From: Antechinus flavipes
Lineage: Eukaryota
DNA length: 64,000 nt
Assembly: GCF_016432865.1 (NCBI RefSeq)
Contig: NC_067398.1
Span: 137,702,001 to 137,766,000 of the forward strand
Direction: 5' to 3'
Both the position numbers and the translations under genes were made by a program. The notes beneath the pieces were generated by a model. It saw nothing but the letters and a program-made list of their open reading frames with translations, was not told where the DNA came from and ran no database searches. This document shows, one piece after another, positions 601 through 58,249 of the stretch (position 1 is its first letter; each line of letters opens with the position of its first letter).

Positions 601-701
601 TTAACAGCATTTCCACATACAGGCTGTTCCATCAGCTGCTACTGAAAAAATCTTGCTCTGATCTGGACTCAGGGCCAGGTGCAATACTCTGCCTCTGTGG
701 T
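601..701 (-). CDS. CDC20B: CDC20B exon 12 (last coding exon)
   Basis: tttctacag|AC CAC AGA GGC...; (D)[35 protein letters not shown], a final WD repeat. Confidence 0.95.
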
Positions 702-9140: not shown

Positions 9141-9194
<54 letters not shown>

Positions 9195-23359: not shown

Positions 23360-23407
<48 letters not shown>

Positions 23408-35400: not shown

Positions 35401-38400
35401 TATATATTTTGATAATGAGGCCTTTATCAGAGCCTTTAACTGTAAAAATGTTTTCCCAGTTTATTGTTTCCCTTCTAATCTTGTCTGCATTTGTTTTGTT
35501 TGTACAAAAACTTTTCAATTTCATATAATCAAAATTTTCTATTTTGTGATCAATAGTGATCTCTAGTTCTTCTTTGGTCATAAATTCCTTCCTCTTCCAC
35601 TGGTCTGAGAGATAAACTATCCTATGCTCTTCCAATTTATTTATAATCTCATTCTTTATGCCTAGGTCATGAACCTATTTTGACCCTATCTTGGTGTTTG
35701 GTGTTAAGTGTGGGTCAATGCCTAGTTTCTGCCATACTAATTTCCAATTTTCCCAGTAATTTTTGTCAAATAATGCATTCTTATCCCCAAAACTGGGGTC
35801 TTTGGGTTTGTCAAACACTATATTATTAAAATTATTGGATGTTTTGTCCTTTGAACCTAACCTATTCCATTGATCGACTAGTCTATTTCTTAGCCAATAC
35901 CAGATGGTTTTAGTAACTGCTGCTTTATAATATAATTTTAGATCTGTTACAGCTAGGCCACCTTCATTTGATTTTTTTTTCATTAATTCCCTTGAAATTC
36001 TTGACCTTTTGTTTTTCCATATGAACTTTGTTGTTATTTTTTCTAGGTCATCACAAACTGTTATCTTTCTATGATTCCTCAGACATGGACTTCTACAGTG
36101 TTATTTTTTAACCCAAATATGAGATTTCATATTTATTACACTAAATTTCATTTTATTAAATTTATCCCATCTGTCAAAATTCTGACTTTGTGATCCATCC
36201 AGTAGTTAAATTCTCCTTCCCAGTTTCATCCTCAATAAATTTGATAAATATAATCTAAATTTTCAATTAAAGTCAGAGATAATGAAAGCCATTGATAAAA
36301 ACATACTATTTGAGACCACTCACTAAGTTGACATTAATTTATTAATTATTACTGAATCCAGTCATTCAAACAGTTTCAAATCCAACTAAATTTTCTATTA
36401 TCTAGCCCCTAGCTTCTTAAACTGTGGGTCAAAACCTCATATGGGATCTTACAAATAAATGTGGAGGTCACAAAATTATGATTTATTATCAGTAAATGTT
36501 TGATTTGTATACCTATTTTATATGCCTATCAGCAAGTAAAAATTTCTCAGACAAAAATGGGTCACAAGTGGGAAAAGTTTAAGAAATTCTGAAGGACATC
36601 TATATCTCTATTACTATAACTTGTCTACCTGGAAAGAAAAGGATACTATCAAATGCTTTGCTCAAACCAAAGCGTATTACATCTATGGAAATTCATCCAA
36701 TAATCCTGACAAAAAGTTGAAATGATTTTTGATATATTCCTGACAAATTGACTTTTACTTATCATTGATTCTCTTTCTAAGCATTCAAAAACCATCTCTT
36801 TAATATTTCATTCTAGAATTTTGCCCAGAATAAAAACTAAATTGCCAAATCTAGAGTGTGGATAATCTACCACTATTGTTATTCACAGCTGAAAACACAC
36901 AGACATTCACATACAAGTTTTTTCAGCATCCTGGCATATAGTATATCCAGTTATAATGATCTGAACTCATATTCTCCTAATATCTTCTTATTTATCTGAG
37001 ATTTTAATTCTCTGTTAATCTTTATTCTAGCCTTGCCAGGCAAAAAGGTTATTCTCTTTGGTAGAGAATAAAGAAGCAAAATAAGGTTTTGGTAGTTGAG
37101 TATCATTGAAATCACTGGTGTTTATGTCATGCCAGTTCTACCCTTGAGAATATTACTTTATTACTTTTAAGACTTGTAAAAAATTTTGACCTGAAGATCC
37201 TACCTAGGTACTATCTTGAATTCTTAAAAAAAAAAAAAAAATACTGCCTCCAAATCCAGAGTAGGCAGCTAGGTGGTGCAGTGGAATAATGTACCAGGCC
37301 TAGACTTAGGAAGACTGATCTTCTTGAGCCCAAATCCAGCCTCAGGCGCCCACTGGCTGTGTAACCCCAAGCAAGCCATTCATCCTGCCTGCCTCAGTTT
37401 TCTCATCTGTTAAATGAGCTAGAGAAGGAAATGGCAAACTACTCCAGTATCTCTGCCAAGAAAACCCCAAATGAGGTCATGACAACTCAGAAATGACTAA
37501 AACAAATGAACAACAATGACAAAGTCTAGCAGCCATCCAGACAGTTGAAGTCAACCAGTATCATTGTGTTAAATGCATATGTGCTTCCCACAATTATCAT
37601 CCATTTTCTCCTTCAGGCCCAGCATATTACTTTTGCCACAGTATTCTTTTTTCACTATATTTACCCTATTTAATTGCTTCATTTCTCTAGTTCTCAGATT
37701 TCTTCAATAAATATAATTTCTCTATATATATTTATCTAACCTGTCACTTCTGAATAGTCAAATTCCAGTCATAAATCACATTTTATTGTGACATTATTAA
37801 TGATATCTATGGGGTCAGATTTACTTCCTTACATCAATATTTATATTTTACATTCTATATCAGCAGTAATTTATATATTTATATATAGACAGCTAAAATC
37901 ATGAATTCTTCCTAGGGAATGACCAAACAAATTATAGTACATCAATATAATGAAATATAACTGTTTCATATGAAACAATGGATATCAAGAATTCAAAGTG
38001 TGAGAAGATTTCCATGAATTGATTATGAGGAAACTAAAAAGAACCAGGAAATGTATCTGTGTGTACATAGTAATATGTGTATATATGTTTGTGTTTACAT
38101 TGTAGTCACTCTGTGTGTGTACAACTAAATATAGGCACTTAACAAATTTATAAAATTGAATTGAGCTCTTTAATAAGAAAAGAAATACAAATTAAAACAA
38201 CTTTAAGGTAGTATCTTATCCCCATCAAAAAGGCCAGAGACTCGCAACACAATTAAGCTATGGAAAATAAACACTTACTATCTATTAGTACATGGAGAAG
38301 TTGTGATTTATGTCACAATTCCCACAATTGTGAGAATATTCACAATGAACTTTTCTAGATGGGTACTCATATGATGGACATGAAGTCTACCATAGAAATT

Positions 38401-40103
38401 GGACTGGTAGTCCTTCCATTTTGGAAGGTCCTTCCAGAGTTTATCCATTATTGGTAGAGTCTTAAAAAATTCAAGATCATCTCCATATCTTAATGAGGCA
38501 TCAAAGTAAAATTTTAACACAAAAGATATCAGAGATATTAAACAAGGGTCAGTTCATCCTGAGAGATACTTTTTCTTTTTTAATTCATTTTTACTTTTTT
38601 AAAAGTATGAATAATGACTTCATGCACACCCTATCACAAATGTTAGTGTAGAATTAAGTTGTAATAGTTGGTGACTCTCACTGAAAGATATATCAAGGTA
38701 GCCAAATAATGACCAGATATGAATAAGGTAGAATACTATCTTCTTAAGAAATATATTTGAGATATGATGGAAAGCCTAATGACCATTATCCACTTCTTAT
38801 GATCCAAGTAGAAACAAATCCTATTTTTCCCTTTTTTTGGTAAGTAAATAGAGAGAAAAGACTATTGTTGTTCATTTTTGTAACCAGAACCAGAGCCTAG
38901 CACAGTATCTTAAGCAGTCAGTTCTAAATAAATTTTCATTGATTCAGTTCTAAATAAATTTTCATTGATTCAGTTCTAAATAAATTTTCATTGAGTTAAA
39001 AAATAATGGCACTTGTGTATGTAACAAAATGATGTAGATATGGATTATAAACACTAATGCTTTGAGAAACTGAGATAAAGAGTTAAAGCAACTTATCACA
39101 ATCCAGAAGTGATACACTATACATACATTTGGTTCTTAGAGATTTTTTTGTTCTTTCCCCTAGTTTATGTTATTTGGTTTATCTCCATGTATCAAAAAGT
39201 GAATTAACTAAGATTTGTTATTAAATTTTGGCTTTAAATCTATGATCTCATCAGTTTGAGTGCTTTTGCCAAAGTACAGATTGGAACACACCCACAATTT
39301 CTCATCTTGTGTGGCTCTTGTTCCATGTTCTCTTATGACTCCTTCAAAGAGAATTTAACCGATGTCCCAGAGGTCTTACTCTATGTTCCTTAGAATTCTG
39401 TAGGTACCAGTGAAGGTCCTGAGCTCTCCATCATAAACCCTCAATTCTAGCTACATAATTGACCTTCTCTCATTTCCAATCACACTTTTCTTGGATTTTT
39501 AAAAAGTCATTTCTAATATACAAGATTTCATTGGCAATATGTTGTAATTTATTTATTTCCAGCATATTTCCCTCCATTGCCTTTTGGATGACCTGCAATT
39601 TCAATTCCTGAGAATAAAATGTTACCTGATTCCTAGCTACATAGCATTTCCAGAAAACTAATTGTATTAAAAAGATGGGTTTTTGTTTCAGAAAGCAATC
39701 TGAGATCACTGGCACCACTGTGCACTTTCTAAAACAAAATCTAATCAGCTCTTCTCCTCCTATTCAATTCTGACTCTCCCGTCATTGTCCATTTTCAGTG
39801 TCAGTTCAAAATGTATAATAAGTAGATCCCTGAGCTATTCTTCAACCACTTGGTTTTTCCTGTGTAGACTATTTAAAGATTGTGCATCTCATCAGGGCAA
39901 CTGTAGAATAGCTTAGGGTGTGAAACAATTAATGCTCATTGATGTGTAAGAAATAGTACCTGGACGACCTCACCTTCTATATGTAATTCCTCTTCTTTTT
40001 GTGCTCTGCTATGAATATTGTCCATAACAGTAACAAATATCTTTAATGAGTATATTGTATAGATTGCCTTTAAATCTGTGGTTCATATTGGTCATCAGAA
40101 GAT

Positions 40104-40149
<46 letters not shown>

Positions 40150-43100
40150 CAAACAAATAAATGAGCTATACCTTTTGGGCCCCAGACCAACACAATATGT
40201 TGAGTTTGCATTGGGGGTCTCTCAAAAATAGTCTCTACTTCTTGTTTTGCCTCAAATCAGGAAGTACCATGAGACCAGTAAAATCTAGTTCGTATATCTT
40301 AAAGGTCACTTGGCTTTTCCTGAAAGAACTCCAACTTATAAGACATCATATGGAGGAAAAAAATAATTTAACTTGACAAAACAATGCAAAGGTCTTACAT
40401 ACAAGTCCTACCAAAAAAAAAAAGAAAATTCTTCTTCCCTTTACAAAGGACTGTCTGGGGGCTTTGTTCTAATTCTTGACTTAAAATTTCACACAACACA
40501 GTATTATTGAAGGGATACGCTGGAATCATTACTCAGAAAGTGCATGAAACAGCTCTTCAAAGCTGGTCCTGTGGACTTCGTTTGAAGCCTAAATCAGACT
40601 ACACAACTGGATCTCCTATATTCTCTTGTTGAGGCTTCTCTTCCTATATATCAATTTGGTTCTGGCTCCTAGATACACTGTGGAACCGAGAGTCCTCATC
40701 TGTTTTGTGTCAAGGACCTCTTCAGGAAGCTAGTGAAACCTCTACATGGATTCTTCTCTTCTCAGAATAATGCTTTTAAATGAATAAAAGACATAGGATT
40801 CGAAGCCAATTATTTTAAAAATTAATTTCATAATTATTAATATAATTGTTTTTTAATAGTTAACAAAATTTTTTATTTATATGTTCACAGATCCCAGGTG
40901 TTGAGACAAGTATGATGGGCCTCTTCCCAAACCCATGCAAAACCAAGAGTCTCTTTGCCCCTCTCTGAGTCTCCATATCCATCCCCAGTATTTGTCCCTA
41001 TCACTTTTTAAAGCTCAAACTCTATATTAGGAACTCTTAATCTTTTCTGAGTCATGAGATCTCTTTTGACAGCCTAATGAAACCTATAGACCCCATCACA
41101 GAAGAATATTTTTTAACTACAAAAAATAAACTCTTTAGGATTACAATAGAAAACTATATTGAAATAAAGAAGGGATCTTTTCCCTCCAAGGTTCATGGTC
41201 TTCTTGGGGGCAGGAAGGGGGTCATGATCCTAAGTTAAGAACCTCTGCTCTTTACTCATCACCCATGTAAAATGCACTAACCATTTTGCCTATAACTTTA
41301 TATGACAATTCTGATAAATGGTATATTTGAAACTAAAGTAGCTCCTAAATTTCAGAACATTTCTGAGCATCAAAAATATTTTGGATTGAAAAATGTAGAA
41401 GATATTTTGGCCTTATCATGTCAGATTGCATCTGAATACCTCTTTCTTAAAAACCAGGTTGTATACTGCCTACCTCTATTCTACTTCTAACGGTACAATA
41501 GCAATATCTAAAGAATTTCCCTCTGCCTAGACACAAAAAGAGAAAGAGGAGTCACTAAAGTATCACATTCATAGGTGCAACCATTAAGAACAATTCAAGC
41601 TGGAGCTATCACCAGGCCAACAAAATGTCTGTCCTGCTTCCCTCCTTCCCATTTTCAGGGATCCTTAGAGAGGCTAGCTGGTGGGGTTGGCAGTTACCTA
41701 AATGATTTTATTTCTTCCTCTTTGAGGTCTTCTTATGCAAAAATATGTCCACAATTGGTCTACAAAAGTAAGCATTTAAGCCTCACCTACCCAACAAGAA
41801 TACAATAGAGGAAAAAATGTGAAATTCTCATCATCATTCCTTTTTACAAAATGCAAATTCCCTTAGATGGAGAAACATATACATCTATTGATGTGTTCAT
41901 GTATGGTGTCATCAAGAATCCACATAACACTCACTTGCAAGGTGCTAAAGGAATAGGACACAACACTGTCAGTTTTTGACTCAGAGAAGGGGAAAAAGAC
42001 CAATCTAGAATAGAGATGTCAAACATGTCCAATGGTCCAACACACCTAAGAACAATATTAAAATGTAATTGGGAAATATTTAACAAAACATATAAAAATG
42101 TGTAATATAAGCAATATTAACTTGTAAGCCTGCCTTTTCTGGGATATATTTCAGGAAACCACAAACAAAAACTGTGCAGGATAAAAAGTAAATCATTCCA
42201 GCTTTCTGAAAAGGAGGAGGAGGAGGAGGAGACATCTTGCCCTTCCTCTGGACTTTGGAGCTTTGCTCTGCTTCACTCAGGTCCAAATAACTGGCAGGAC
42301 CAGCTGTCACCTTTGTGTTGTCCTTGGTCCTCAACCACAAAGGACAAACAACAATGATATTAATGTATGGTTTTCTACGTCATGCAGCAGCAGAGATCCT
42401 AAAACCGCAGATTTCTTGGAGCTTGACACCACTAATCTAATGCTCCCACAAGATGCAGGGACAACAGAACAGCACTGAGGATGCTGCTGCCTGCATTAGC
42501 ATCATGAGGGGAGCTGGTGGGGTAGGTAGGCGAGTACAATGATCGAGGGAAGCATACAGGGTGAGATGGTGCAACCCAGAGACATATTTGGCTTTCAAAA
42601 TTCTACCTAATCTCAAGGATGATTTGGACAGTTGAGTAGTAGCCATTCAGTAAATACTTGTCTTATTCCTCCCTTTTTTTTTAAATAACTTTTTATTGAT
42701 ACCCATGCCAGGGTAATTTTTTACAGCATTATCCCTTGCATTCACTTCTGTTCCGATTTTTCCCCTCCCTCCCTCCACCCCCTCCCCCAGATGGCAAGCA
42801 ATCTTTTACATGTTGAATAGGTTACAGTATATCCTGGATACAATATACATGTGCAGAACCGAACAGTTTTCTTGTTGCACAGGGAGAATTGCTTATTCCT
42901 CCTTTACATTCTCATCATTAGAGTTTTGTTCCTTTTTCAAAATACATACATCCTCGCCTGCTCAGCTCAAACTGACCCCTGAACTACATAAAAATATCCA
43001 TTCATTGCATGCAGCCTGTCACCTTTCCTAGGCAGGTCAAGAGTACATTATAAATTGGGGAATGTTAAGAAGTCTTTGGTTGTCCTGAGCCCTCATCTCT

Positions 43101-46100
43101 GCACCTCACCCCATAGTGTGGCAGCCTGTTTCCTATAAACCTTGGTAAGGAGAAGCATAGAACTCAAGCAGGCACAAAGGCTTCCCCAAAAATCTGCTTA
43201 TCTGCTCAATTCCTGAAGAATTAATCACGGCTCTGTTATAAGCTTAGACTGAGAAGATCCTAGTCATTTTTTCTCTTTAAGATTTTTCCAGTTACATGTA
43301 AAAACAATTTTAACATGCTTTTAAAACTAATTCCAAATTTTCTCTCTTCATCCTCCTTGTGAAGGCAAGCAATGTTATATATATACACGTATGTGTTTGG
43401 GGAAGGAATATGTTTTTTGGTTTTATCAGCATCCGGCCTTCCCCATCCTAAATTCTAGGGCTTGAATCCAACATATCCCAAAACAAATGAGGTGCGCTGG
43501 TCGGTCCCCGGAGGCCCCCCAGGTTCCACGAGCTACAATGTCTGCAGTTATTGTAGCCTTTTTAGCGGTCCTTTCGAGCTGCTGCAGCGCCACCTGCTGG
43601 CCACATGTTTTCGGACTTCTTTTAGGGACGAGGAGGACGATTTTTAAAGTTCGATTAAAGTTCTTTCCTGCCAGACTTTCCATCGGTTCCCCACTGAAGT
43701 CCGCCAGCCCGTGGGGCCCGCAGCCGGCTCAGCAGCATCCTTCGGTGCCCTTCGGTCCTTCCAGGATGACATAAGACCCGGCTGGCCCTTCCCGGCCCGG
43801 GCGGAGGGTTTCGGCTCCTCCTCCAGCTCCAGGCCTGCCGAGACTGCCCCGGGAAGCCTCCAAGATGGAGCCTCTCGCAGCGACTCCGTTGAAATACTCC
43901 ATCCCCAAGGCCAGGCTGATTGCCGTTTTGTTGTCTATGGTCCTGTGCTCGGTGACCTTGCTCCTGCTGCAGCTGAGGTACCTAAAGCCTAAAATCAAAG
44001 ACTTCTATTCTTTTGAAGTGAAGGATTCAAAGGGAAGGACTGTTTCTTTGGAGAAGTACAGAGGCAAAGTAAGTTGCATCTTGTGATTTTCATTGGTGTG
44101 CCTTTCCCAATACGCCCTTTCTCTCCCCGCTTTGCAGAATCAACCTTATGCTCTGTAATGGGGCTTGATTAGAGGGATCGATGAATTTAAACCACTCTGC
44201 CTACATAAAAGCTTGAGGCATATATCCCAGGGGGAACTATTAGGACACGTCACTTAACCCCTAAGGAAAGGTTTTAATATCACAAGCCAACTAAAGTTTT
44301 TTTTTTTTTTTTTAATTTTCTAAACTAAGCTTTGTTTGTGTTAATGCTTTGGATCATTTCGAGAATAACTAGGGGAGGGGGAAGGGATGGTGATGGGAAT
44401 GGGGATGGAAATGGGAATGAGACTTGTTATGTGAAAATGCAGATACAACTTTTACTTCTATCACTAAAACTCCTTTTTGCACTCCCAGTTGTCTTACTAT
44501 CGATAATTGTGCCAATGCTATCTTTTATAAAAATGTACTTAGAAATGTATTAATCCCAGAAAGGAACTGCTTTGTCCGATGCTGTAATCTCCGAGCTAGT
44601 TTTTCTCCCTGACCTCGCACTTTCTGTAAAAATCTAGGCTTCACTCTATGGTTGCATTTCTTTTTTTCCCGGAGGCTTCACTGATTGTAAACGTGGCCAG
44701 TAACTGCCAGCACACAGACAGAAATTACTTAGCGCTGCAGGAGCTGCACCGAGAGTTTGGATCGTTCCACTTCAACGTCTTGGCTTTCCCGTGCAATCAG
44801 TTTGGAGAATCCGAGCCCCGCCCCAGTCACGAAATAGAAGCTTTTGTAAAATCCAACTATGGCGTAACTTTCCCTATTTTCCACAAGATTAAGATTCTAG
44901 GATCCGAAGGAGAACCTGCATTTAGATTCCTTATTGGTAAATATCTTCACTTGTGTTACGTTTTCTAATTGTCTTTCATTTTTGAGATTAAACCCCTCTG
45001 CTCCCAGACCTTAATTTTCTGTTTTTCATTTCAGAAATGTTTCATTAACAAAGTCTTACAAAAACAATCATCTCATCTTATGTGCTTTGCAAACCGCAAA
45101 AGCACTTTTGTAAACAGTAAAGCGCTATTTAAATGTGAGTTCATATACAAATATTTTAAGAATCCTTGACTTCATTTATGTAATTATTCTGTTGACAAAT
45201 GTAGATGCTTCCATACATTAGTAGACAATATTCATGAATTGCCATGGTTTCTTAAATTCACTATCTGATGACCCAGAAAGTAATCTCCAGTCTTAATTTT
45301 ACTGGTAAGACAAAAACACGGTTCATCCTCACCTTAGTACGTTCCTTTACAATTAGTTATTGGCAAACTTTTTAATGAAACATATACTTATGAAATGTAT
45401 TTCGTTTATCTCACCTTGCAAATTCTTCATTGCATAATTTAATTTACTTCCGTTTATTCAGCATTTATTCACCTACTCCATGCCATGGTGAGGCATTTTT
45501 AAGATTTTAGTGGAGACTTAGCAAGTTTTGTTACACCAAAATTAGTGTTTCATTTTCTTTGGTAACACAAGATCTGATCCAATTAAATTGCAGTTTTTAA
45601 TTCAGAAAGCATTGCCATAGCTATGCAACTTATTTCATGACAGATTTCACCTTGCAAATTCTTATTAGCATAGCTTCACCAAATTTAATAGGGAAACACC
45701 TAATTGTTCTATAACCCTAAATAATGAGAAAGGAAATTTTCCTGCCAGCTACAAAAACCTGTTTGGCTATCTTCAAAAGCTTGCTAACAAAGTAAAATAG
45801 CTTTCATGCTTGAATTACCCAGTCCTATATCATAACACATTCAGTATGGATCCTTGTGATTTTAAGCACCACTGATACATGTTATGAATCAAAAGTTCTT
45901 TATATTCTTCCATGGTGTATATGTATCCCTTTTAATTATATTATATGAAGCAGCTGGGAAAATTTATCAGGTTAAGATCTGATATCCTGAAAAATAAACG
46001 TAATGACTATCTAGCAGTGTAGACAAAGGAGCCAGTAGGAGCACTGTTATTACTGGTTGTAGTTCTCAAAATATATGGGTACAACGTCTACTCAAATAGA

Positions 46101-49100
46101 AATGCCCCAACTCAATAAGCTTTTCTTTTCTGCCCTGTGTGAGGGACTCTGTGCTAACTACTACAAAAATAAAAGTCCTTCCTTCCAGGAGCTACATTCT
46201 TCTGGGAAGACCAATTAGGAAGTACTGCCATAGTCCAGGCAAGGAGTGCTTGGACTCAAATCTAACATTTGATTTTTTCATTCCATGAAAAGCACCATAG
46301 GCATTTTAGATTTAAGAAGTACAAATTATCCTTGCTTTCAAGAAGCCAACAAGCTACTGACTGCCCTCTCATATCTGTGATCTTCTAGTTCGTTCTTCCA
46401 TGTCTTTTGCTTGCTCTTTCCCAAAAATTTGGGACATCCACCCATGTACTTCTAGGCTTCTCATCACCTCTACAAAGATGGATCCTAGGTGTCCACTTTC
46501 CACTCAATCTTGGACCATCTCTCATATGGACACGCCCCTCAGGCTCACTATAAAAGCATTTATCCCTTCTATCCCAAAGCCGACAGGCACACTTCTTTCA
46601 TACTCTGTCCTCCCTGGACACACATCTTGAGCTGGACATTCGGAGCTCCTCCTTCCTCCAGCCCAACTCCAGCCTCCCTTGTGGTCCTTAGTTCCAAGCT
46701 TCACAAATGCTTAGCCAGATTGCCTGCTCCTTTTCCCTCTTCTTACTCTGCTCTCCCCTCCTCTCCCTAATCTCTTCCTAGGGAAATCCTTCGGGCCCAT
46801 CTTAGGCACTACTTTCAGGAAGTTTCCTCAAATACTCAATTTCTCCATATTCACATCCCTCATTGGATCACTGCATCTTCTGGACTAATTTCTATCAGTT
46901 ATGTATGACCTCTCCCCTGCAAGATTATGAGCTCTTGAAACACATGGACTGAGTGCCATCCAATTTTATCTTTTGATCACTGGTGTTAGGATAGGGCCTA
47001 ACATGTAGCAGGCATATATGTTCTCCTTAAATTGAAACTAAATAGAAAGCCAAAGGTGTGAAGCATTAAAAAGTTTAAACAATGTATTGTGGAAGCCATA
47101 GAAAAGGAAATGATTATATCACGTCTGGGGGATCAAGACAAGCTTCATAAACGTTTGAAATAACTAGACTTTAAAGGATAAATGGAATTTCAATAACTAT
47201 TCTAGGACAAGCTAAGGAGATAAAGATCCAAAGTCAAAGACAGGATTTCTTTTGAAGAATGATGGAATAGTTCAGCTTTTCTGAACATCACATGCATGAG
47301 AAGTATTAAAAGTTGAAACAAAGTTGGGAATACATCACCGAGCATTAGAATGGATTTTATCCCATAGATAATGGGGAACTATTGAAATCATGGAAATATG
47401 TCTCATATTAATCTGGCCTCAGTTGTAAGCTATATTCAGTGGAAGAGAGACAGGTAATGGCAATGGAAAGGAGGGAATAGATGGGAGATATTTAATCAGA
47501 TGCTGCTGACTATTTTTGGGGGTTTTTTTTGGCTATATTCACCTAAAAATTCAGTATTCATTTTTTTATTTGCAGCTCAATAATCTTCATTCACAACCCA
47601 AATCTTAAAATCAGTCCTCTAATTTTAATGTTAGAATTATAGTAATAGTCCTCTCCTTGTTAATTTCTGAAATCCCATTGCTCAAAAAGTGAAAGAATTT
47701 ACAAAGCTATGTTGATTCTAGGTTTGCTTTGAAGCCAAGCAATATTTTGGGACTAACGTATAAAAACTTCAAATGCTATTGAGAATTAGGTCTTTTTAAA
47801 GTTTTGAACAGGGTGGACCTAGATAAAGCAGCATTTTAACTCTCATCTCCTTGTGTAATGAAAACTTTTTTTTTACCATAAATTGTTATATGCTTTGAAA
47901 CCTTCTCCATTGTAGAATTTCCATTCCTTGAAATTTTCTTCTAGTTAGAAATGTTTCTTTAAATGTTGCATCTTTAAATCAGTCAATCAGGTGGGCCCAA
48001 ATGATCTTCATCCATAAATTTAAATTGCACATCAACTGACATGAAATGGTATTTAAAAGGCAAAAATTTCCTTTCCTACCTTAAACCTACTTTAAGGTTC
48101 ATGTTATTCTTCAGTTTTTGTAGCTATTATGTTCTTTAACATTTCAAACAACTATATACTAAATACAAATTAAACCACAGTCACCTAGTTATTTTATCCA
48201 TTAAAATTAAATGAACAAGATAAATTTCTATTTAACATTCTTCCAAAATGAACTATTTCACACCATCCCCAAAAGATCTGTAGAAAATCTTTAAGTACAT
48301 CAATATCTGGATCTTTCAACTTTTTCCTAAAATGGTTTGACTAACATTACAGATTCAGGAAACTGATTCCTAAATCCTCATTTAAGCAATATTTAGTTGT
48401 TAGGGCTCTGTCTCTTTTGATTATCCTATATTTACTGGTTTTATATCACTCAGAATGTAAACTCCTTGGGCTAGGGACACATTTTTGTATTTGTATTCAC
48501 AGCACCCAGCACAATGTCTTACATAAAGGTTTGTTGAGTTGAAATGAATTCAGGAAAGATGGTGCCCGAAATTAAGTTTAAGATTTTGAATTACACTGAA
48601 ATTTAATGTTAATTTGTCTACTCATTTTTTTTAGATTCATCAAAGAAGGAGCCAAGATGGAATTTTTGGAAATATCTTGTCAATCCTGAGGGTAAAGTTG
48701 TGAAATTCTGGAGACCTGAGGAATCCTTGGAAGCCATCAGACCAGATGTGGCAGCTTTAGTTAGACAAATTATCATTAAAAAGAAAGAAGACCTTTGAAA
48801 CTGTCATTAAGTATATGAATCTAAAGCAGCAGTGAGAGCATCAAAATGTCTAAATGTCATTTTGGTTATTTATCTTAAATCATTCCAACAATTCTAGAAC
48901 CCAATTAAATATGATTAAATATGATCTCTAAGTGGAAGAATGTTATCTCTAAGTGCCCAGGATATAGATGTTCCTCTCTCTCCTTGTCCCTCATCCCAAA
49001 GAGATTTTTCAAGCTGGACATAAAATCAAAATTAAATATAGCCTCATCAAAAAGTTAAAATTCAGAGTGCTTCACCACCAAAGCTCACTACTATCCATTT

Positions 49101-52100
49101 AACATGAAACTTTTATGTGTTTATAATCGATGGATTAAATACATACTACCCCACTGCTATGTAAAGGACAATTAAATTTGAACAATATTACTAAAAATTT
49201 TGTATGATCAGTATAAGCAGAAGAGAGGTATTGGAGGTATCATAGTACCTAAGATAAATGTTCAATCTTATGCATTTTCAAATTTGTAAATAAATTTTTA
49301 AGTAGAATTCTTCTTCCATCTTTTGTCCAAATATGTCCAGCTCTTCATGACCCCGTTTGGGATTTTATTGGCAAAAGATACTATTTCCTTCAGCTCAAAA
49401 GGCTTAAGAGACATGCCCAGAATCTGAGTCCAGATTTGAACTCAAATGAGAATTTCTGACTTGGGACTGTCACTTTATCCACTGAGCTACCTAGCTTCCC
49501 CCTCTGGCATCCTAGTATTTTTTATTATTTTGACAAATCTGTCACAATTTTCATATCATATACTATTTAGGAACTTTCTAAATTTTAGTAAAGCATTTCT
49601 CTTAATTTCCTAACATTCCTCTAATTCCACAAGTGGTGCTTATATCCAGTCTATCTACCTTGAATTTGGAAAAATAACTGAAAATATGTCCAAATATATA
49701 TGTAATGATTCAAAACAATTAACCACAGATTGATCATTTCTGTTAAGGGTGAACTGTCCACTTAGCAAGTAATTTTTGCTTGATTCTTGACCATTGTGAT
49801 GGCAGGGAGTAGGGGAACAGGAGAGCTCAACCCCTAGATAGTTATAGTGAATAAACATGGAGAACTATAATTATTACAAAAGCTATTTATTTAAGTCTGA
49901 ATGTAACAATTTTTCTTCCCAAAATCAATTTCAGAGTTTTGTCAGTCACATCATAGTCATGTTCTAATCACAAGTAATCAACCCCTAAACAGTAAAGAAG
50001 CCTTTCTGATTTTGTGTTCTAATTATGTCTTCCTATGAAGACAAGGGAGCAACGAAGTGGGACTAACAGCCAAGTGAAAAGAATCACTTCAAATTTGGCT
50101 TAGAGGGACAGGAGCCAGTTTTTCTGGTTTAGCTTCATTTTGCTCTGTTGGTGGGGATTCTTGGTAAGGTAAGGCAGCCTTGCCCCTCTGCCATGAAGCT
50201 ACTGCTCTAGATTCAGGTGAAGATAGAAGAGATTCCACAATTAGGTTCTAAACAATTTTGAAACTAAAGTTCTTAAAGGGACATAGCAAGAAATATTTGC
50301 AGAAGTACACCAGCATGTGTTTTTAACTACCTCAGTTTGCCTAATAATTTTTTTAAAGTTTTGATAAAAGGTCAAGGCTTTGGAATTCTTAAAACTCACC
50401 TGTTATATAACTAAAGCAGCATTCTAAATTATAGATTTTTTAAGGACAAAGACTTTCTTTGCTTTTGGGAAGAGTTCAGGAGACCTGGATCCCACTCTTA
50501 GCTCTCCGCTATTTTGTTATATGATTCTGAGCAAATCATTTAACCTTTCTGGATCTCAATTTCCCCATCTGTAATTGAGGAGTTTGGACCAAATCCTCTC
50601 TAAAGCCCCTTCCCCCCAGACCATTTGGATGAATCTGACAATAATGATATTTGAAATATGAAAATAAGATCAAATGCTAATAGGTTTCTCTTTAATTTCC
50701 AATTACATGTAAAAACAGTTCTTAATTTTCATTTCTTATTTTGAGTTCAAAATTATCTTTCACCTTCTCTCCCCTCCCATTGAAAAAGCAAGCATTTTAT
50801 AAAGGTTATACATATGCAGTTATGTAAAACATTTCCATGTTAGTCTGAGTCTTTTCTCAAACTGAGACCTGTTGAAGACCTTAGCATAAAAAGGCCAAGG
50901 TCTCCCACTGCATCCAGGGCCAGCTCCAGCCGTCCTGCTCTGTTATCTTGCCACGGATTCAGATGGCTCTGGAAGAAAAAGTGAGGCAGGTGACCTTGCA
51001 CAACCCTCTCTCCCTTAAATCCAAGTCACTTGCATGTCATGTCATGGCTTCCCCTCCTTGATGCACTAACAGCAGCAGACCTCCTACCTATCAAACACTC
51101 CTCTGTCTTCCTCACAGCCCCGAATTCTGGATGCTCTTAGTGTCCTGTGCCCTTCTCTCTCTCGACAGATATTCTTTGGTGATTTCATTAGTTATCAGGG
51201 ATTTGATCATCATTTCTATGCAGAAGGATCAACAAATCTATCTATCCATTCCCATTCTCTGTCCAAGCCTCTGTCCCACATCACTGATTGCCTTTTGCAC
51301 ACTCAAAAATGTATATTCTGCATATAACTCAAAACTTGACACATAACTCATTTCATCAACCAAAAACCTTCTCCCTTCCAAACTTCCCTAAGTCCAAAGC
51401 ACCCCCATTTCTCCCATTTCCAAGGCTCATAACTAACTCATGGATCTAACCAATTTCCAAACTTGCCTTTTCAACCTCTGTCCCATCTCTCCCATCCATG
51501 CCCTCTCTCTTCACCCCCACCTTACTCCAGGCCTTCATTGGTCACCCTCAGCCAAACCAGCCACCTCTGCTCTCCACCTCTTGCCTCAGCACCTTTCATC
51601 CCAGATCCCCCCCTTAAGTTACAAGTCACCGCCAATGCCCCCAACTCCTCATATCCTTTTCCAAACTACCTTTCAATGACCTTGTTATTTATTCACTACT
51701 TGGTTTCTACCACACATATTAGAAAGGTTAACAAACACTTAATGGTTAATTCTGTTCACAAGGAAAGCATTCCTATATATTATAAAGCCAATTAAGAATT
51801 CTTTTTTGCATGGTTATGAGGAGAAGGAAGAAACCCTCATCTCCAGGGAGGGGTCTTATAACTTGTATGTACTGAACCAAAGTATATAACATTGAAATTG
51901 TGGGGCACTTCCAAATTATACTGGACTCTTACAACTGGATTTTAAGGTAGAAAACTTTATATCACTCTTAAATATAATAAACATTCCTCCCCCCAACATT
52001 CAGGAAAATAAGAAAACTAGTTATCTGAATGTTCTTCCTTACTGCCTGAATACAGGGGAGAATACCTAGATACTCTCAGAAGAAATCCTGTAATGGATTT

Positions 52101-54768
52101 TCTCTCATTTATGCAAGAAATGCTGTACAAAATTGATTCTCCTGTGACGAAAGATGAACAAAATAAAGACCAAAGTACCTCTAATCAGGGTTAAGAAAAA
52201 AAGTATTTCTTCATTAAACTTAATGTAAATAAAGAAATACTAAGAAATGTCATATAAGTGCTTTAAACAATTTGCTTAAACCTGCCCTGATGACAGAACA
52301 TGTGGAAATGTGGAAGTGTATGCAGTTGCTGGAAAATAAGAAAAACAGCTAACTAACAATACACTGCCCAATCACCACACACATATACTAAAACCATACT
52401 TTTGTCAACTAGCTCTTCTGCCAGCTCAAACAAAAAATCTTTTCAGGTCAAAAAAAAAAAGAAAAAGAAAATGAACATATAGCCAAAGTACAGGTATATG
52501 TTGTTCTAAATTTCAACTCATCTTTGAATCAACTATATGTGAATCAACTGGTAATATAATGATGCACATTCAAGGGATTGGGATCTTTTTCAAGTGAGAT
52601 TTGATTGGGGCAAGGAGAAAAGCCATTAAACTGCAGCACCCAGGGAAAACTGAACAGGAGACCAGATTCAACCTTACATTTGAGTTCATCTTGTTTCTGG
52701 AGTATTGTCACTGGAATCAGAGCTGCTATAATCCAGAAAATGGTTTTTCATCCTCCCACTTCCCCATGTGTGAGAGAGCTCACCCTGGGTAAAGCCTCTC
52801 AGATTTACAAATAGTTAAAGAACTATGAACAACGTATTCTAAGCCTCTCTCCCTCTCTCTAGACATGTCTCTATAGATATGACTTCATCCTTTTCGTTTC
52901 TTGTTTTTCTTGCTTCTATTCTTCTTGTATTTATCTGATTCTTCTATTCCATCCCCCTTTTCTCTTTCTCCATCTTTTTTTTCTTTACCTCCTTCCCTTC
53001 TTATGACTGCCAGAATTAAAAGGTTTTTTAAAGTATCTGTTGAATAAAAGTTATTTCCTGTATTTTTAAAATGTAAAATTCACATGTATGTATGCTTCTG
53101 TGTTTACCTCAATCAATCTTGGTTTAAAATGTCTAGAAATATTTTAGCTTTTCTATTCAAATATTTCTTAAATTTTTAAAAAATGCTACAAATTTATTTC
53201 ATATATTAGACAATGTCAAAACTACTAATTTAAAAACAAAAAATATTTAACAAGTTCCATAATAATTATCAAGTCATTCACTAAATTATAATTGTTGGAA
53301 TTGTTCAATAATGAGGAAAAAAAAGGTGGGATAGTTAGGTGGGAAACTAGCTATATAGCATTAGCTCTGGAGTTAGGAAGAAATGAGTTCAAATTCAGAC
53401 TCAGGTGTTTAGTAGCTATATGACTCTAGACAAGTAAGATACTTAATCCCAAATGCCTCAAAAACAAATCAATGATAATAAAGAATGAAACAGTAAAATC
53501 ATAGAATCATTTTCCTTTATCATCCTAACAACAAAACAATTAAAAGCATGGACATTTAATTTATGCTATGTGGCAGATGCAATAGGACAGCAGTTGCATG
53601 TTAGCTGGTGCATTCAGATATTCAACCAGCTAACAATACACTGCCATCCCATCACAACCAGATACGCAAGGCTTTTCAGAGTCTTCTTGATGATTTCACC
53701 GAAAAAGATGAACCAGTCCAGGAGCAAGTGGCAGGCTAGCCCTGACTGCTCAATTGAACCCAAGCAGACAGCTTACAGCACACTGCCTACCTGACCCAGG
53801 AAATGGGGTCAACCCACTAGAAGAAAGCACATTTACCTTAAAGGCCAAAAAACCTTGATTCCAGTCCCAATTCTACTATTTCCTCTTGTGGGCAAATCTG
53901 TTCCCCATTGTAGAGCTCAGCTTCTCATCCATAAGATGGAGGTAATAGTTGCATTATGTATTTACATGGCTATCATCTGGGGACAACTTTTGCTAAATAG
54001 GAACAACTGCTACTACAGATAGCTTAGTTGTGTATGGTGATTTTCCAATATAAAAAGGGCAGAAATTTACTAACAACTCAACAACATTGTTAGAAAATGG
54101 AAAGAGGAAGCTTGTCTACCCACATTAACTCCATTAAATACCGTACACTTCCAATGTCCAGTGGTTAGATAGTAGGGCCAAAGCTCTACCATCCATTATT
54201 ACATGACAGCCTTGGATGATGACCGTGTCCCTCCATGGTTTTCATTTGGAAAGGTAGCACGGCAGAGCAGAAAGAATGCTGCTTTACACAGATAACAGGG
54301 CAGCTTCTCAAAGTTACTACTCTATGCCAATTTCAGCTTCCATTCAGAGTTCATAAGATAAAGTCATGTCCATGCTGTTCATTCATTAAAGATGAACACA
54401 AGTTTCTTGTATACAATTTTTTAATATTCTACTTAATTGTCAAACATTTCATAAAGTGTAATGGACATTTCCACAACTAGAAATATAGGAATAGTGAGAA
54501 AGGGTATATAGAAAAGTAAGGAATTAACGAAAAGGTCAGAAATTAGAAGCTAGAAGGGAGAGTTAAAAAGGATTGGACTTGATCATAGACATAAAGACTG
54601 GAGGGGACACAAATCATGGATCCAAGGCCCTTCAGTTTTAAAGATGCTCAATTTGCCGGAATGGCTCGCTCACATGGCAATCAAGGAAAACACCTGAGAT
54701 AAGGGCAGAAGGGAAAGTCTAACCCCTGGATTCTACAGCTTTCCCTAGAAAGCCATCAGATGGCAGTG

Positions 54769-54813
<45 letters not shown>

Positions 54814-56388
54814 TTTTTTTTTTTTTAAATCTGATGGTAAAGGAAATGGACATTGACCTAAGCATTGAAGGGAGGAAATGGCAAAAACATGATCCCTGCA
54901 CTTAAGTAGCTCACGTTTTAATGAGACAATGCACACACATGCATTCGTGCATATGTATAAAAATACATTTTTATGTGTATATGACAAAGCAAGGACAATA
55001 GAAATGGGAGTGAGGGAAGGCAATAGCAGTGCAGTGGACAGCAGCAAAGGCTTCTTGCAGAAGAAGAAATTTGAGCTCCATCTCGAAGGGAGCCAGGAGT
55101 TGGAGATGAGGGACAGTCAGTGAAAGGCAGAGAAAGGCAAGGAGACAAAAGAGGGAGGGTTTATAACCACAGATAGAGTGCCTCATGGAGTATGTGGTAG
55201 GGAGTAAGAGACGGAAAGAGTAGAAAAGGGCCAAGTTGTGAAGGGCTAGACAGAGGATTTTATATTGATCCTGGAGGTGACAAGAGAAATATTGACATTT
55301 ACTGAAGTAACATGGTCAGACCTGTACTTTAAGATCACTTTAGTAGCTGAATAGAGGCTAGATTGACATGAGGAGAGACTTGGGGGAGAGCAAGCTAATA
55401 ACCAGAAGGTGTTACATGGAGGAGGGGGAAGACAGATTTGTAAAAACCACACATAAGGGAAGTATATTATAGAATGTGAATGTTCTAGCATTGCAATGAA
55501 CCATTGACACACTTTTGCTTTTCCTCTCATACTTTGCATGTGATGTCCAAAAATTATAGTTTTGCTTCTCTAAAAGTCATAATCCAACACAAATAACCTA
55601 CTTTGGCAGGAAAAATAATATATTACACTCATAAATTATTGCATTATTTAAAAATGTATTTAATGTTTCAAATTTGTCAAAATATATTTCCTTTTCTTAA
55701 TTTATCCAAGTTTACAAATAGGGCTCATCCATTCACTTTTATCCTTGACTATCTCTTCCCATGTTCCTTGGGGAGTTTACTCCCTCATTATTCACTAATT
55801 TGTGTACTGGCTCTTTTTCTGACATTCACAGACAAGCTCAGAATTCCCTTATACTGAAAAAAGCTTTCCCTTGCCCTAGCCATACTCTCAAATTTTCAAG
55901 GCTAAACTCCCAAGAGTACTTACACTCTCACTGCCTCCTCTCCATTCACTCCTGAATCCATTCCAGTTTGCTTTAATCTCAGTCCTCTACAGAAATTACT
56001 CTCAAAATTGCCAATTGTCTCTTAATTGCTAAATCCAATGGCTTTTCAGTCCTCAATCTGCTTGATTTTGATGTCCTGAGAGTATCTCAAACTTGTCCAA
56101 AACTGAACTTCAGATCTTCCTTATTAAATCCACTACTCCATACTTCCCTATTTAAGTGATGTCATCACCAACTTCACAATCACCCCAGTTCAAAATCAGT
56201 CACATTTGACTTTTTACTTTCCCTGAATCTCCCTCTATATCTCTTACCACTACAGCATCTTTTAAATCCATTTCTTCTATCTTCTCATCTACCTAATATC
56301 CTAGGTTCAAAATCTCACTACTACTGTCTGAATTATTTTAATTAGCCTTCTGATTGGTCTTCCTGCCTCTAATATCTGTTTTGGTATG

Positions 56389-56447
<59 letters not shown>

Positions 56448-58241
56448 TACACACACACAGAGTCTCTCTTTCTCTCTCTCGTACTTTCACTCAGCCAACC
56501 TTTAAAAGCCACAGCTCCCAAAATATTTCTAGAACATAGATCTTATCATGTCATTCACCTGCTACAAAGCTTCCATAATAACAAAGGATAAATACTATTA
56601 GTTAGATTAACTTTAAAGCCCTCCATTTTATGATTCCAACATACTTTTCTTATTTCACACTATTCCACTCTATACTATCCAAACCTCTAATATTCCCCAA
56701 ACCCCAAGCGTACTTCCTCATCTGTGTTTTGCAAAATCTTTTATCTTCAAACACAGTTTCGACCAATCCTTTCATGTACTGTCAAGTACACTTCTCCACT
56801 CCAAAAAATACTTTCTCCCCATAATTTCCTGGGATAGACTACATTTCACAGAGTCATAAGTGAAAAGGATCTCAGAAGCTTCTCATTTTGCAGACAAAGA
56901 AAGCGAAACCCAAGAAAATCATGGCTCCACTCGATGCAGAACCAGTTCCAGTGCCATATCACCCCGCTAATAAACTTGATTGATCCCAGTGGAATGTCGA
57001 CTCCTTTACCACAGAAACCATGTTAGTTTTTACCTTTGTATCCCCAGCATCTACCATAGTCCACTGTAATACCCATGTTTAAAAAATGTTTTTCTAATAA
57101 AATATCTTTCTTACAGAAACTTCTATACCCATTTACAGAGAGAAGACTGCAAAGGACCAGCTAGGAGTCAGAAGGCAAAGTTCTAGTCCCAGGTCTGCCA
57201 TTAACTCATCTCTCACCATGACAAGTCATTAGCTTTAGTTTGCTCGTCTGCAAAATCAAAGTATCTGCCCTATCTCCCTCAGAAGGCTGTCTGACAATCA
57301 AATAAATAATTTTGTCATAGTGCATAGAAAAGGGCAAAGACCATGGGAACTTTGTCCAAAACTTTCTCAAAGGTTAAGAGAATGTAACCATTAATAATGG
57401 GCAAAAAAGAGTTTGCATTTATACTACCTAAAAAAGACTGTATTTTATTCACAAGAGCTTATGAGGAGAAGTCAAGTATCATTGCCTCCAACAAATGGTT
57501 TGTCCAGTCAGTCATGCCCTCATTTTACAGATAAGAAAACAGGCTTTGAGAGGTTGAATGGATAAGATTTCAAATCCCGGTGTTCCAGATTCCAAGTCTA
57601 GGGCTCTCTATCCAGTACATTTTACAATTTTTTCAACTCCAATGAATTTTTTTTTTACTACTTTCCATTAACATTTTTTAGTTTTAATTTTAAAATATAA
57701 TTGTTTTATAAAGCGAACAGTAAAAAATGGAAAAATAAGGGCATTGTATTATCTTTTCTAATTAGTCTAGATTTCCTGATTCTTAGATTGCAGTCCTTTC
57801 CCAGATACACCATGCAAGAACTATTTTCCTGAACCACGGAAATATAGAAAACCAACATTGGAAACTTACCTTGCTAACTTTCTGTAAGCATTGGTTTCTG
57901 TTCCGTTTAATACCTTTTGCAAACGTTTTCATGACATTCTCCTTTGAAACATATGAACATAAGAAGAAGCAAGTTATTTGGGATTATAATCACATTTTGG
58001 TTATCTCAAAATCCCAGTGTTCCAAAATGCCCTCTGACCCATGCAATAAAAGCACAAAAAACAATTTCGAAATCTCAGACCAAAATGAATCAAGCACTTT
58101 GCGCTGACCCATAGTAACCTTCTAGGTACTACTTTTCTGGGAAGTCCTAGGGAAGGAACGGAAGGGAACGTCACTCACCCACAATATCTCTTCTTCAGTT
58201 CGGACCCTCCGAAAGCCGTATCGCTCCAGTTTCCATTCCAT
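601..58241 (-). CDS. CDC20B: Cell division cycle 20B (WD40 protein, deuterosome/multiciliogenesis); full 12-exon gene span, 523 aa
   Basis: Twelve exons (63,72,226,134,94,120,197,95,226,126,118,101 nt = 1572 nt) with AG/GT boundaries and matching phases splice into one open frame from MEWKLER... to ...WKCC*, resembling human CDC20B as I recall it. Locus context (nested GPX8, miR-449) agrees. Confidence 0.96.
1359..1453 (+). mobile_element. Very short L1 3'-end insertion (~95 bp)
   Basis: agcgagtgcaagggataatg...aataaaaagttac plus A-rich tail; imperfect flanking duplication aaaacttaattggttcag / aaaccttaattgattcag. Confidence 0.85.
1840..2450 (+). mobile_element. L1 3' end of a different marsupial subfamily
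   Basis: gaactgatgctgagtgaaatgagcagaaccaagagatcattgtac... L1 ORF2-end/3' UTR signature ending in an A-rich tail. Confidence 0.8.
4126..4243 (-). CDS. CDC20B: CDC20B exon 11
   Basis: ttttcatcag|ATT TGT...TTT TTT G|gtaagt; [39 protein letters not shown]; 118 nt. Confidence 0.95.
4742..4867 (-). CDS. CDC20B: CDC20B exon 10
   Basis: ctttaag|GCC ATG AAC TGG...CAG|gtaaac; [42 protein letters not shown]; 126 nt. Confidence 0.95.
7224..7449 (-). CDS. CDC20B: CDC20B exon 9
   Basis: ctacatag|T GGT TCA...AAG|gtaagg; [47 protein letters not shown]...STSVK; 226 nt. Confidence 0.95.
9143..9191 (+). repeat. (CA)n microsatellite
   Basis: Direct; further (CA)n at about 23364-23404, 40107-40145, 54770-54810 and 56412-56458. 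Confidence 0.95.
9240..9334 (-). CDS. CDC20B: CDC20B exon 8
   Basis: cag|TTA TGG GAT...AGC AG|gtgaga; [31 protein letters not shown]; 95 nt. Confidence 0.95.
9971..10167 (-). CDS. CDC20B: CDC20B exon 7
   Basis: ccttccag|AT CTA AAC...CAA|gtattg; [28 protein letters not shown]...[12 protein letters not shown]; 197 nt. Confidence 0.95.
10215..10330 (+). repeat. (GGAA)n purine-rich simple repeat
   Basis: Direct; reads as a polypyrimidine tract on the minus strand upstream of the CDC20B exon 7 acceptor. Confidence 0.9.
11370..11505 (+). mobile_element. Short CORE-SINE (WSINE1-like)
   Basis: gcagctgaatagtgcagtggatagagtgcc...gagttcaaat...gggcaagtcacttaaccccaattgcctca plus A tail. Confidence 0.8.
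11886..12031. other. Assembly gap (146 N) next to a GA-rich repeat
   Basis: Run of N. Confidence 1.
12756..12875 (-). CDS. CDC20B: CDC20B exon 6
   Basis: ttctttgcag|GC TGC...TAC T|gtgagc; [40 protein letters not shown], containing the CDC20-family 'P..DDYY' element; 120 nt. Confidence 0.93.
13755..17398 (-). mobile_element. 5'-truncated L1 (ORF2 from end of endonuclease through RT and C-terminal region, 3' UTR, poly-A)
   Basis: ORF2 peptides ([39 protein letters not shown]) broken by frameshifts; 12-bp TSD gatatagtcttt at 13743-13754 and 17399-17410. Confidence 0.97.
17869..18085. mobile_element. hAT/Charlie-type MITE
   Basis: Terminal inverted repeats cagggttcttaac ... gttaagaactcctg; related copies at about 41027-41246 and 40700-40890. 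Confidence 0.65.
20105..20198 (-). CDS. CDC20B: CDC20B exon 5
   Basis: ttacttttag|AAG TGT...TGG AAA G|gtatgt; [31 protein letters not shown]; 94 nt, phases 0/1 fit the neighbouring exons. Confidence 0.88.
21457..21673. repeat. Long inverted repeat (arms 21457-21537 and 21592-21673)
   Basis: Arms align 75/82 (6 substitutions, 1 gap) as reverse complements; 54-nt spacer. Confidence 0.95.
21790..22023 (+). repeat. Polypyrimidine minisatellite, ~20-bp unit (tttccttcacctctccctct), about 12 copies
   Basis: Periodic unit visible directly. Confidence 0.9.
22045..22296 (+). mobile_element. MER63-like (hAT-Blackjack) DNA transposon relic
   Basis: gagtatttacacc...gaaatcagcaaaggctacaaat...ttgttgttaaacattt...gcataccattg matches the MER63 layout as recalled. 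Confidence 0.65.
24890..25023 (-). CDS. CDC20B: CDC20B exon 4
   Basis: cttgttttcag|GA TCC...AGA CAG|gtagcc; [44 protein letters not shown]; 134 nt, phases 1/0 fit; sequence poorly conserved. Confidence 0.8.
27952..28177 (-). CDS. CDC20B: CDC20B exon 3
   Basis: aataaacag|GCG CTG...CTT A|gtaaga; [37 protein letters not shown]...; [10 protein letters not shown] matches CDC20B; 226 nt. Confidence 0.93.
31620..32150 (+). mobile_element. Decayed CR1/L3 LINE 3' region
   Basis: tctggagcattatattc...cattttaaggacattg...tgaggatcagatgcagaaactggagatgttgagcttgaaaaagagaa, recalled as typical CR1/L3 sequence. Confidence 0.65.
34319..36052 (-). mobile_element. 5'-truncated L1 (~1.7 kb) of the same family
   Basis: ORF2 C-terminal peptides and the same 3' UTR as the 13.7-kb copy; 18-bp TSD acaaactgttatctttct at 34301-34318 and 36053-36070. 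Confidence 0.97.
36405..36592. mobile_element. hAT-type MITE
   Basis: Inverted ends cttcttaaact ... agtttaagaa around an AT-rich interior. Confidence 0.55.
37264..37520 (+). mobile_element. CORE-SINE (Mar1-like)
   Basis: tRNA-like head, CORE segment, gagaaggaaatggcaaactactccagtatctctgccaagaaaacccc tail; related copies at about 28855-29070, 30395-30625 and 22500-22690. Confidence 0.8.
38310..38560 (-). mobile_element. Decayed non-LTR RT fragment (CR1-like)
   Basis: YGDDLEFFK...DKLWKDL resembles CR1-type RT (Y/F)ADD...KLQxDL; short, with stops on both sides. Confidence 0.45.
38919..38994 (+). repeat. Tandem repeat, 26-bp unit x ~3 (cagttctaaataaattttcattgatt)
   Basis: Two full identical copies plus a 24-nt third, no spacers. 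Confidence 0.95.
42676..42891 (-). mobile_element. L1 3'-end fragment (~215 bp)
   Basis: Same 3' UTR sequence; TSD core cttattcctcc at 42662-42672 and 42892-42902. Confidence 0.92.
43430..43865 (+). promoter_or_regulatory. GPX8 CpG-island promoter / 5' UTR
   Basis: GC/CpG-rich segment directly upstream of the GPX8 ATG; GGCGGAG GC-box at about 43800. Confidence 0.75.
43865..44068 (+). CDS. GPX8: Glutathione peroxidase 8 exon 1 (N-terminal membrane anchor)
   Basis: [68 protein letters not shown]|gtaagt; 204 nt. Confidence 0.97.
44675..44936 (+). CDS. GPX8: GPX8 exon 2 (peroxidatic Cys region)
   Basis: [18 protein letters not shown]...[13 protein letters not shown]...AFRFLI G|gtaaat; Cys (not Sec) active site and Ser in place of the usual GPx Gln, typical of GPX8; 262 nt. 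Confidence 0.96.
48635..48798 (+). CDS. GPX8: GPX8 exon 3 (coding part)
   Basis: tttttttag|AT TCA...; [20 protein letters not shown]...[12 protein letters not shown]; WNF motif and KEDL ER-retention signal; total CDS 630 nt = 209 aa. Confidence 0.97.
49289..49294 (+). terminator. Candidate GPX8 polyadenylation signal (AATAAA)
   Basis: First AATAAA I found about 490 nt after the stop codon; another at about 49850; cleavage site unknown. Confidence 0.4.
50860..51055 (+). mobile_element. Marsupial dispersed repeat (RTE-associated SINE-like)
   Basis: aggccaaggtctcccactgcatcc...gtgaggcaggtgaccttgcac...aatccaagtcacttgcatgtca; related copies at about 5545-5680 and 10930-11160. Confidence 0.6.
52298..52383 (-). 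ncRNA. Additional miR-449/miR-34-family hairpin (449d-like); predicted 5p 52347-52369 GGGCAGUGUAUUGUUAGUUAGCU
   Basis: GGCAGUGUAUUGUUAG identical to miR-449a positions 2-17; folds with 3' arm CAGCAACUGCAUACACUUCCA; extended lower stem; UG at -14/-13 and CAUC 17 nt past the predicted 3p end. Confidence 0.85.
53575..53660 (-). ncRNA. MIR449A: miR-449a precursor; mature 5p 53625-53646 UGGCAGUGUAUUGUUAGCUGGU
   Basis: Mature sequence identical to human miR-449a as recalled; 3' arm GCUAACAUGCAACUGCUGUC conserved; lies in CDC20B intron 2, sense. Confidence 0.97.
53715..53800 (-). ncRNA. MIR449B: miR-449b precursor; predicted 5p 53767-53788 AGGCAGUGUGCUGUAAGCUGUC
   Basis: About 120 nt upstream of 449a; flanks CAGGUAGGCAGUG, loop CUGCUUGGG and 3' CUGCCACUUGCU match miR-449b; seed GGCAGUG intact. 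Confidence 0.9.
57870..57941 (-). CDS. CDC20B: CDC20B exon 2
   Basis: tttcaaag|GAG AAT...AGC AAG|gtaagt; [24 protein letters not shown]; 72 nt. Confidence 0.87.
58179..58241 (-). CDS. CDC20B: CDC20B exon 1 (coding part)
   Basis: ATG GAA TGG AAA CTG GAG CGA...TTG TGG|gtgagt; [21 protein letters not shown]. Confidence 0.95.
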
Positions 58242-58249
58242 CCCCACTG

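Follow-up and report, generated by a model that had tools for sequence, protein, structure and literature searches.

The window analysed here, a stretch of 64,000 nucleotides from Antechinus flavipes, carries on its minus strand a hairpin that we take, with a probability of about 0.9, to be a functional microRNA gene within an intron and the Antechinus ortholog of the fourth member of the miR-449 cluster. Taken together, the evidence from conservation, synteny, fold and sequence profile indicates that the hairpin RNA has been under selection since before the bird-mammal split. The element is not of a new kind; its interest lies in a reciprocal pattern of paralog loss and in a derived G at the 5' end of its predicted product. 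Throughout, 'marsupials' stands for three Australidelphian species, and neither a didelphid nor an afrotherian is part of the comparison.

Genomic setting and comparator loci

MiR-449 is known to sit in the second intron of CDC20B and to act in multiciliogenesis (PMC6220262). The Antechinus hairpin fits this intronic cluster in location and strand: it lies on the strand of the host gene, 1.2 kb downstream of miR-449a along CDC20B transcription and ∼3.5 kb past the stop codon of GPX8 (Table 1). In the devil locus, annotated CDC20B covers the orthologous hairpin. The residues encoded by the GPX8 exons of the window are identical to those of A. flavipes GPX8 at 205/205 positions, and the corresponding counts for devil and koala are 203/205 and 197/205. 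A protein search with the WD40 exon of CDC20B returned multi-repeat WD40 proteins only and no CDC20B.

Table 1. Features of the window that bear on the fourth miR-449 paralog (positions in the window)
Feature	Position	Strand	Basis or remark
Host gene CDC20B	604..58241	-	start codon near 58241; last coding exon 828-604; exon translations
GPX8 coding range	43865..48798	+	nested antisense in the same CDC20B intron
GPX8 exon pieces	43865-44068, 44681-44932, 48637-48795, then stop	+	
CNNC (CAUC)	52289..52292	-	first base 18 nt after predicted 3p end 52310
Hairpin precursor, fourth miR-449 paralog of Mir-34-P3d type, lower stem included	52297..52383	-	Rfam RF00711, fold, orthologs
3p arm, ends predicted	52310..52331	-	pair table; same letters in Antechinus, devil and koala
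Terminal loop, 14 nt	52332..52345	-	sole part of the hairpin that varies among marsupials
Apical UGU, stem-loop junction	52345..52347	-	columns invariant in 5/5 species
Predicted 5p product, cut before G52369, seed GGCAGUG	52348..52369	-	pair table and Rfam consensus alignment
Basal UG, -14/-13	52382..52383	-	kept in bird and turtle
miR-449a hairpin	53574..53660	-	Rfam 76 bits, above gathering
449b-position hairpin, 5p begins AGGCAGUGUGCUG	53716..53802	-	Rfam 32 bits; fold -39.9 kcal/mol, z -2.0

Orthologous loci were reached through the nested GPX8 gene as a handle. The translation of GPX8 exon 2 led to an open reading frame for the sauropsid exon on host contigs of metagenomes, and a profile built from separate GPX8 exon rows (alignment A1, exons not joined) led to full-length GPX8 proteins. 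The loci compared are those of the devil Sarcophilus (L004), koala (L005), platypus (L006), the tortoise Chelonoidis (L007) and three cetaceans (L008-L010), together with contigs L001-L003, which come from a bird as judged by their GPX8 exons. Scanning metagenomes for the 3p arm of the candidate gave no match, and the sole match to a pattern combining flank and signature was the bird contig already in the comparison.

Some other elements of the window should be mentioned. Long open frames resembling LINE-1 ORF2, of reverse-transcriptase type and up to 415 aa without a stop, lie within a CDC20B intron at 14306-17408 (minus strand), and a run of 146 N occupies 11886-12031. A weak SNORD20-like match at 51127-51218 on the minus strand (28 bits against a gathering score of 43, E 0.14), with letters resembling C and D boxes, is probably due to chance.

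Fold and processing signals

Folded in a context of 136 nt, the hairpin has a stem that runs from the pair G52380:U52300 to the pair G52346:C52331. The upper stem consists of 20 bp and four single-base bulges, all four of them on the 5p side, while the lower stem below 52369 measures ∼11 bp and extends further when a shorter context is used; the result is a stable precursor of ∼35 bp with a single-stranded base. An 89-nt version reaches -28.8 kcal/mol (z -3.49), none of 200 shuffles being as good, and the hairpin is far beyond chance. The letters that the first-pass annotation had reported for this hairpin are found on the minus strand, with the 5p arm running from G52369 and U52370 standing before it.

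The GGCAGUG seed block that marks the mir-449 (MIR-34) family is present on the 5p arm. On the minus strand, the octamer GGCAGUGU is confined to the three hairpins of the cluster, its copy in the candidate being at 52368-52361. In the alignment to the Rfam consensus G52369 falls in the column of the family's 5' U; the alternative predicted 5p start, U52370, would change the seed to GGGCAGU. Both processing motifs that had been proposed on first reading are in place. The CNNC (CAUC, 52292-52289) is separated by 17 nt from the predicted 3p end, and its column is kept in marsupials and turtle, with a deletion there in bird. The basal UG is found as U52383-G52382; since it sits inside a UGUGUGUG run, it carries little meaning alone. 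The apical UGU is a further motif, absent from the earlier description.

Judged by its homology to miR-449a, miR-449b and miR-449c, the hairpin would be transcribed as part of the CDC20B pre-mRNA, from the intron that it shares with miR-449b, miR-449a and, in antisense, GPX8. From such an origin it would probably be made where CDC20B is on, that is, in differentiating multiciliated cells and in testis. Microprocessor is predicted to cut ∼11 bp above the basal junction, aided by three motifs: UG at the base, UGU at the apex and CNNC further downstream. Once Dicer had taken off the loop, the 5p strand would act through a miR-34/449 seed on the usual targets of the family, cell-cycle and Notch-pathway genes. 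We infer the expression, cut sites, arm choice and targets of the candidate by homology with the three known cluster members.

Family membership

The Rfam model mir-449 (RF00711) matches the candidate from end to end with 49.2 bits (E 2.6e-9), which is below the gathering score of 60.4 bits. That score is a curation cut-off and not a biological feature, and other hairpins at cluster positions also fall under it, including bird 449a (55.4), cetacean 449c (55.1) and platypus 449b (43.3). The Rfam scan of 49000-58000 gave no further member of the mir-449 family beyond the three hairpins of Table 1. It should be noted that the hairpins at the 449b position score poorly in marsupials, with 32-44 bits for the Antechinus one and for its koala counterpart (L005 19947-20033), and that the koala one folds no better than shuffled sequences (z -0.44). 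Constraint at the marsupial 449b position may be weaker than on 449a and on the downstream paralog.

Conservation and orthology

The devil ortholog (L004 18468-18554) is identical to the Antechinus hairpin at 87/87 positions, compared with a background identity of 91% across 4.7 kb. In koala (L005 18446-18531) the count is 83/87; arms and lower stem are unchanged and all four differences fall in the loop, while alignable flanks of the two species are about 70-77% identical. A scan of the Antechinus-koala alignment in sliding 87-nt windows, covering the 4.7 kb between the GPX8 stop and 53500, ranked 52303-52389 best, with 95% identity against a mean of 50%. The arms are thereby more constrained than the loop, which is the pattern of conservation used in MirGeneDB, and both arms, not the loop, are under strong purifying selection.

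Outside marsupials, the bird locus (L001) contains four mir-449 hairpins: 18600-18688 (c), 17627-17713 (b), 17468-17550 (a) and, 0.9 kb downstream of 449a, a fourth at 16500-16585. For bird and turtle together, the distance of the ortholog downstream of 449a is about 0.9-1.6 kb. The tortoise locus has hairpins c and a and a downstream one at 21615-21699. The basal flank of the candidate is identical to that of its bird ortholog at 14/14 bases, the 5p arm differs at two positions in bird and at two in tortoise, and the 3p arm also aligns with the downstream hairpins of both. A GUUAGUUAGCUG signature is common to the candidate and its bird and tortoise orthologs, as well as to those of devil and koala, and separates this paralog from 449a. 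The first-pass annotation had called the hairpin a miR-449 paralog downstream of 449a, and the orthologs in devil, koala, bird and turtle, with the same position, basal flank and signature, bear this out. An nhmmer profile of five orthologs scores these at 85-95 bits and gives none of the other paralogs more than 29 bits.

Synteny, which had been suggested as a check, leads to the same assignment. The hairpin lies 3499 nt from the GPX8 stop in Antechinus, 3546 nt in devil and 3480 nt in bird, and the distance of ∼3.5 kb is found in four lineages, the fourth being the cetaceans with their relic; orthology to Mir-34-P3d is accordingly backed both by syntenic position and by shared paralog-specific sequence. 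Ortholog folds have z values between -3.7 and -4.6. Their consensus structure of 27 pairs contains one compensatory change (G-C to C-G) and two one-sided changes; the sequences are so similar that covariation can lend little support.

The location of the block on the side toward which GPX8 is transcribed would also suit an element that is not a microRNA at all, either a transcriptional enhancer or a distal 3' element of GPX8 on the plus strand. Such an element would not, however, account for conserved arms around a free loop, nor for the clear paralogy to miR-449a. Besides, the G.U pairs of the stem work only on the minus strand, and the plus strand is less stable (-24.5 versus -28.8 kcal/mol). 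We therefore give this explanation very little credence and keep to the reading of the block as a microRNA gene.

Losses and history of the cluster

The three cetacean assemblies contain only 449c, 449b and 449a according to Rfam. A relic of the fourth paralog is nevertheless recognisable on the minus strand in all three as a 48-nt profile match (17708-17755 in L008, with counterparts in L009 and L010). It occupies the syntenic position, at a distance of 3444 nt from the GPX8 stop in L008. It shares the koala-type loop; its seed block reads AUACAGU and three bases are deleted. The relic has no fold to speak of (-9.7 kcal/mol, z +0.16). The proposal that the paralog was kept in marsupials and is absent from eutherians agrees with this, cetaceans having only a non-folding remnant at the syntenic spot.

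One has to ask whether the Antechinus hairpin could itself be a defunct remnant, left by an old tandem duplication of miR-449a and no longer giving rise to a microRNA. Among the features that count against a functional gene are the Rfam score below gathering, the 5' G, the four bulges on the 5p arm and the thin covariation; the first three would fit a relic, as would the fact that eutherians let the same copy decay. On the other hand, arms of the hairpin are unchanged in devil, koala and Antechinus while the loop changes and the flanks diverge by 25-30%, the hairpin has persisted from the bird-mammal split onwards, and the true relic in cetaceans, with its positive z, is quite different. A dead copy is thus most improbable, and a functional gene is the reading that we follow below.

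On the marsupial side it is 449c that is missing. Neither Rfam nor a 449c profile found it in the window or in the devil locus, and no relic was seen in the 53900-58300 part of the window or in the devil locus either. Koala retains a half-relic at L005 22456-22497 (minus strand), ∼2.4 kb upstream of 449b, in which the 5' flank and the tail of the 5p arm are recognisable, but other letters stand in place of the seed and nothing is left of the 3p arm. The hairpin had been described as an extra one: it is indeed a fourth paralog, but it is not extra in number, since marsupials are without 449c.

In platypus (L006), c, b and a are present by Rfam, and a search with all filters off gave no trace of a fourth paralog in the 2132 nt that separate GPX8 from 449a (14247-16378). 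This interval is only 2.1 kb long and contains no N. Retention outside eutherians, as suggested earlier, therefore applies to bird and turtle and not to platypus, from which the paralog is absent. A long near-perfect fold-back at 19683-19819 of the same locus matches, on both strands, Rfam models of several unrelated microRNAs; it has the look of two SINE-type repeats in inverted orientation and not of a member of the cluster.

Relics and losses on both sides imply that the ancestral amniote cluster was c-b-a-d, and the fourth paralog is older than the bird-mammal split. Marsupials kept b, a and d, and eutherians, represented here by cetaceans, kept c, b and a. The marsupial and placental triplets thus reflect a reciprocal decay of one ancestral copy each, and because relics of the lost copies are still visible on both sides, this makes a tidy case of differential paralog loss.

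The 5' base and the seed

Position 1 of the predicted 5p product is G in the three marsupials and A in bird, tortoise and the cetacean relic, so that the marsupial G is derived; the U at -1 does not vary among these sequences. The change turns an A.C mismatch at the 5' end of the 5p strand into a G-C pair; in sauropsids the U-A step at this place is unpaired. By the asymmetry rule this G-C pair should weaken loading of the 5p strand, and a 5' G is also disfavoured by Argonaute. Arms have been fixed among Australidelphians since the change, which argues that the gene still works with G.

The gene might be real and yet have been diverted by the derived G, either by a shift of the 5' end to U52370, giving the seed GGGCAGU and changed targets, or by promotion of the 3p arm to main product. 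The confinement of G to marsupials beside an invariant U at -1 and the closing of a G-C pair at this step are in favour of such a change, and human miR-449c and miR-34b are annotated one base upstream, with the start U-A-GGCAGUG. Against it, the basal junction and the UG at -14/-13 put the cut before 52369. In addition, position 1 of a microRNA takes no part in target pairing, and a substitution there may be of no consequence. We find altered processing of this kind rather unlikely and lean towards a start at G52369 with the canonical GGCAGUG seed. A start at U52370 with the shifted seed would be a minority outcome, and mixed ends or 3p dominance take up the rest.

A more specific proposal, that the A-to-G change at position 1 has moved the dominant 5' end to the upstream U or switched the dominant arm in at least three Australidelphians, we consider more doubtful still. 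If it were true, a paralog kept by marsupials and lost by placentals would have acquired the new seed GGGCAGU and partly new targets.

Significance

Multiciliogenesis and spermatogenesis both depend on the miR-34/449 family, and to our knowledge nearly all functional work on it comes from human, mouse and frog. The differing composition of the cluster bears on the annotation of marsupial genomes and on how redundancy in knock-outs is to be read.

Comparison with known systems

The cluster 'Mir-34-P3a-d' is listed among ancestral vertebrate clusters in a preprint based on MirGeneDB, which also scores what became of it in 14 taxa, opossum and platypus among them (bioRxiv 10.1101/2021.09.01.458616), and the literature gives four named miR-449 genes, miR-449a to d, for chicken. 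The paralog as such is therefore already known. The hairpin call stands and only its novelty goes, as the first-pass annotation had foreseen for the case of an annotated counterpart. Since human has a, b and c, the candidate corresponds to Mir-34-P3d by elimination, and the letter 'd' and the match to a particular chicken name (gga-mir-449b/c/d) are likewise assigned by elimination. Our literature search returned no useful record for Mir-34-P3d, for marsupial miR-449 names or for the signature 12-mer.

Relative to miR-449a (Mir-34-P3a), the candidate shares the intron, the strand and 16 bases at 5p positions 2-17, and the seed as well if its start is at 52369. It differs from miR-449a, besides its location, in having G and not U as the 5' base, in a GUUA duplication in the 3' half of the 5p arm, and in a loop and 3p arm whose sequence is unrelated.

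In eutherians and platypus the third hairpin of the cluster is miR-449c (Mir-34-P3c), which, like the candidate, lies more than 1 kb from the b/a pair. However, it is found upstream of 449b and the candidate downstream of 449a, and their sequences are distinct. The idea that the candidate is a displaced 449c was rejected, as the orthologs of 449c lie upstream of 449b and group apart in sequence.

The name miR-449d had been ascribed to some non-eutherian tetrapods. This holds for chicken, but the name is not confined to them, as it is used in cattle too: bta-miR-449d was published as a 20-mer without the GGCAGUG seed (PMC6722470). This 20-mer had no match at ≤3 mismatches in the cetacean CDC20B/GPX8 locus; it looks unrelated in sequence and shares only its name with the candidate. 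The closest known counterpart is Mir-34-P3d and the chicken miR-449 set, in which there is likewise a fourth hairpin with the miR-34/449 seed in the CDC20B cluster, the sauropsid fourth hairpin having A at position 1 where the marsupial one has G.
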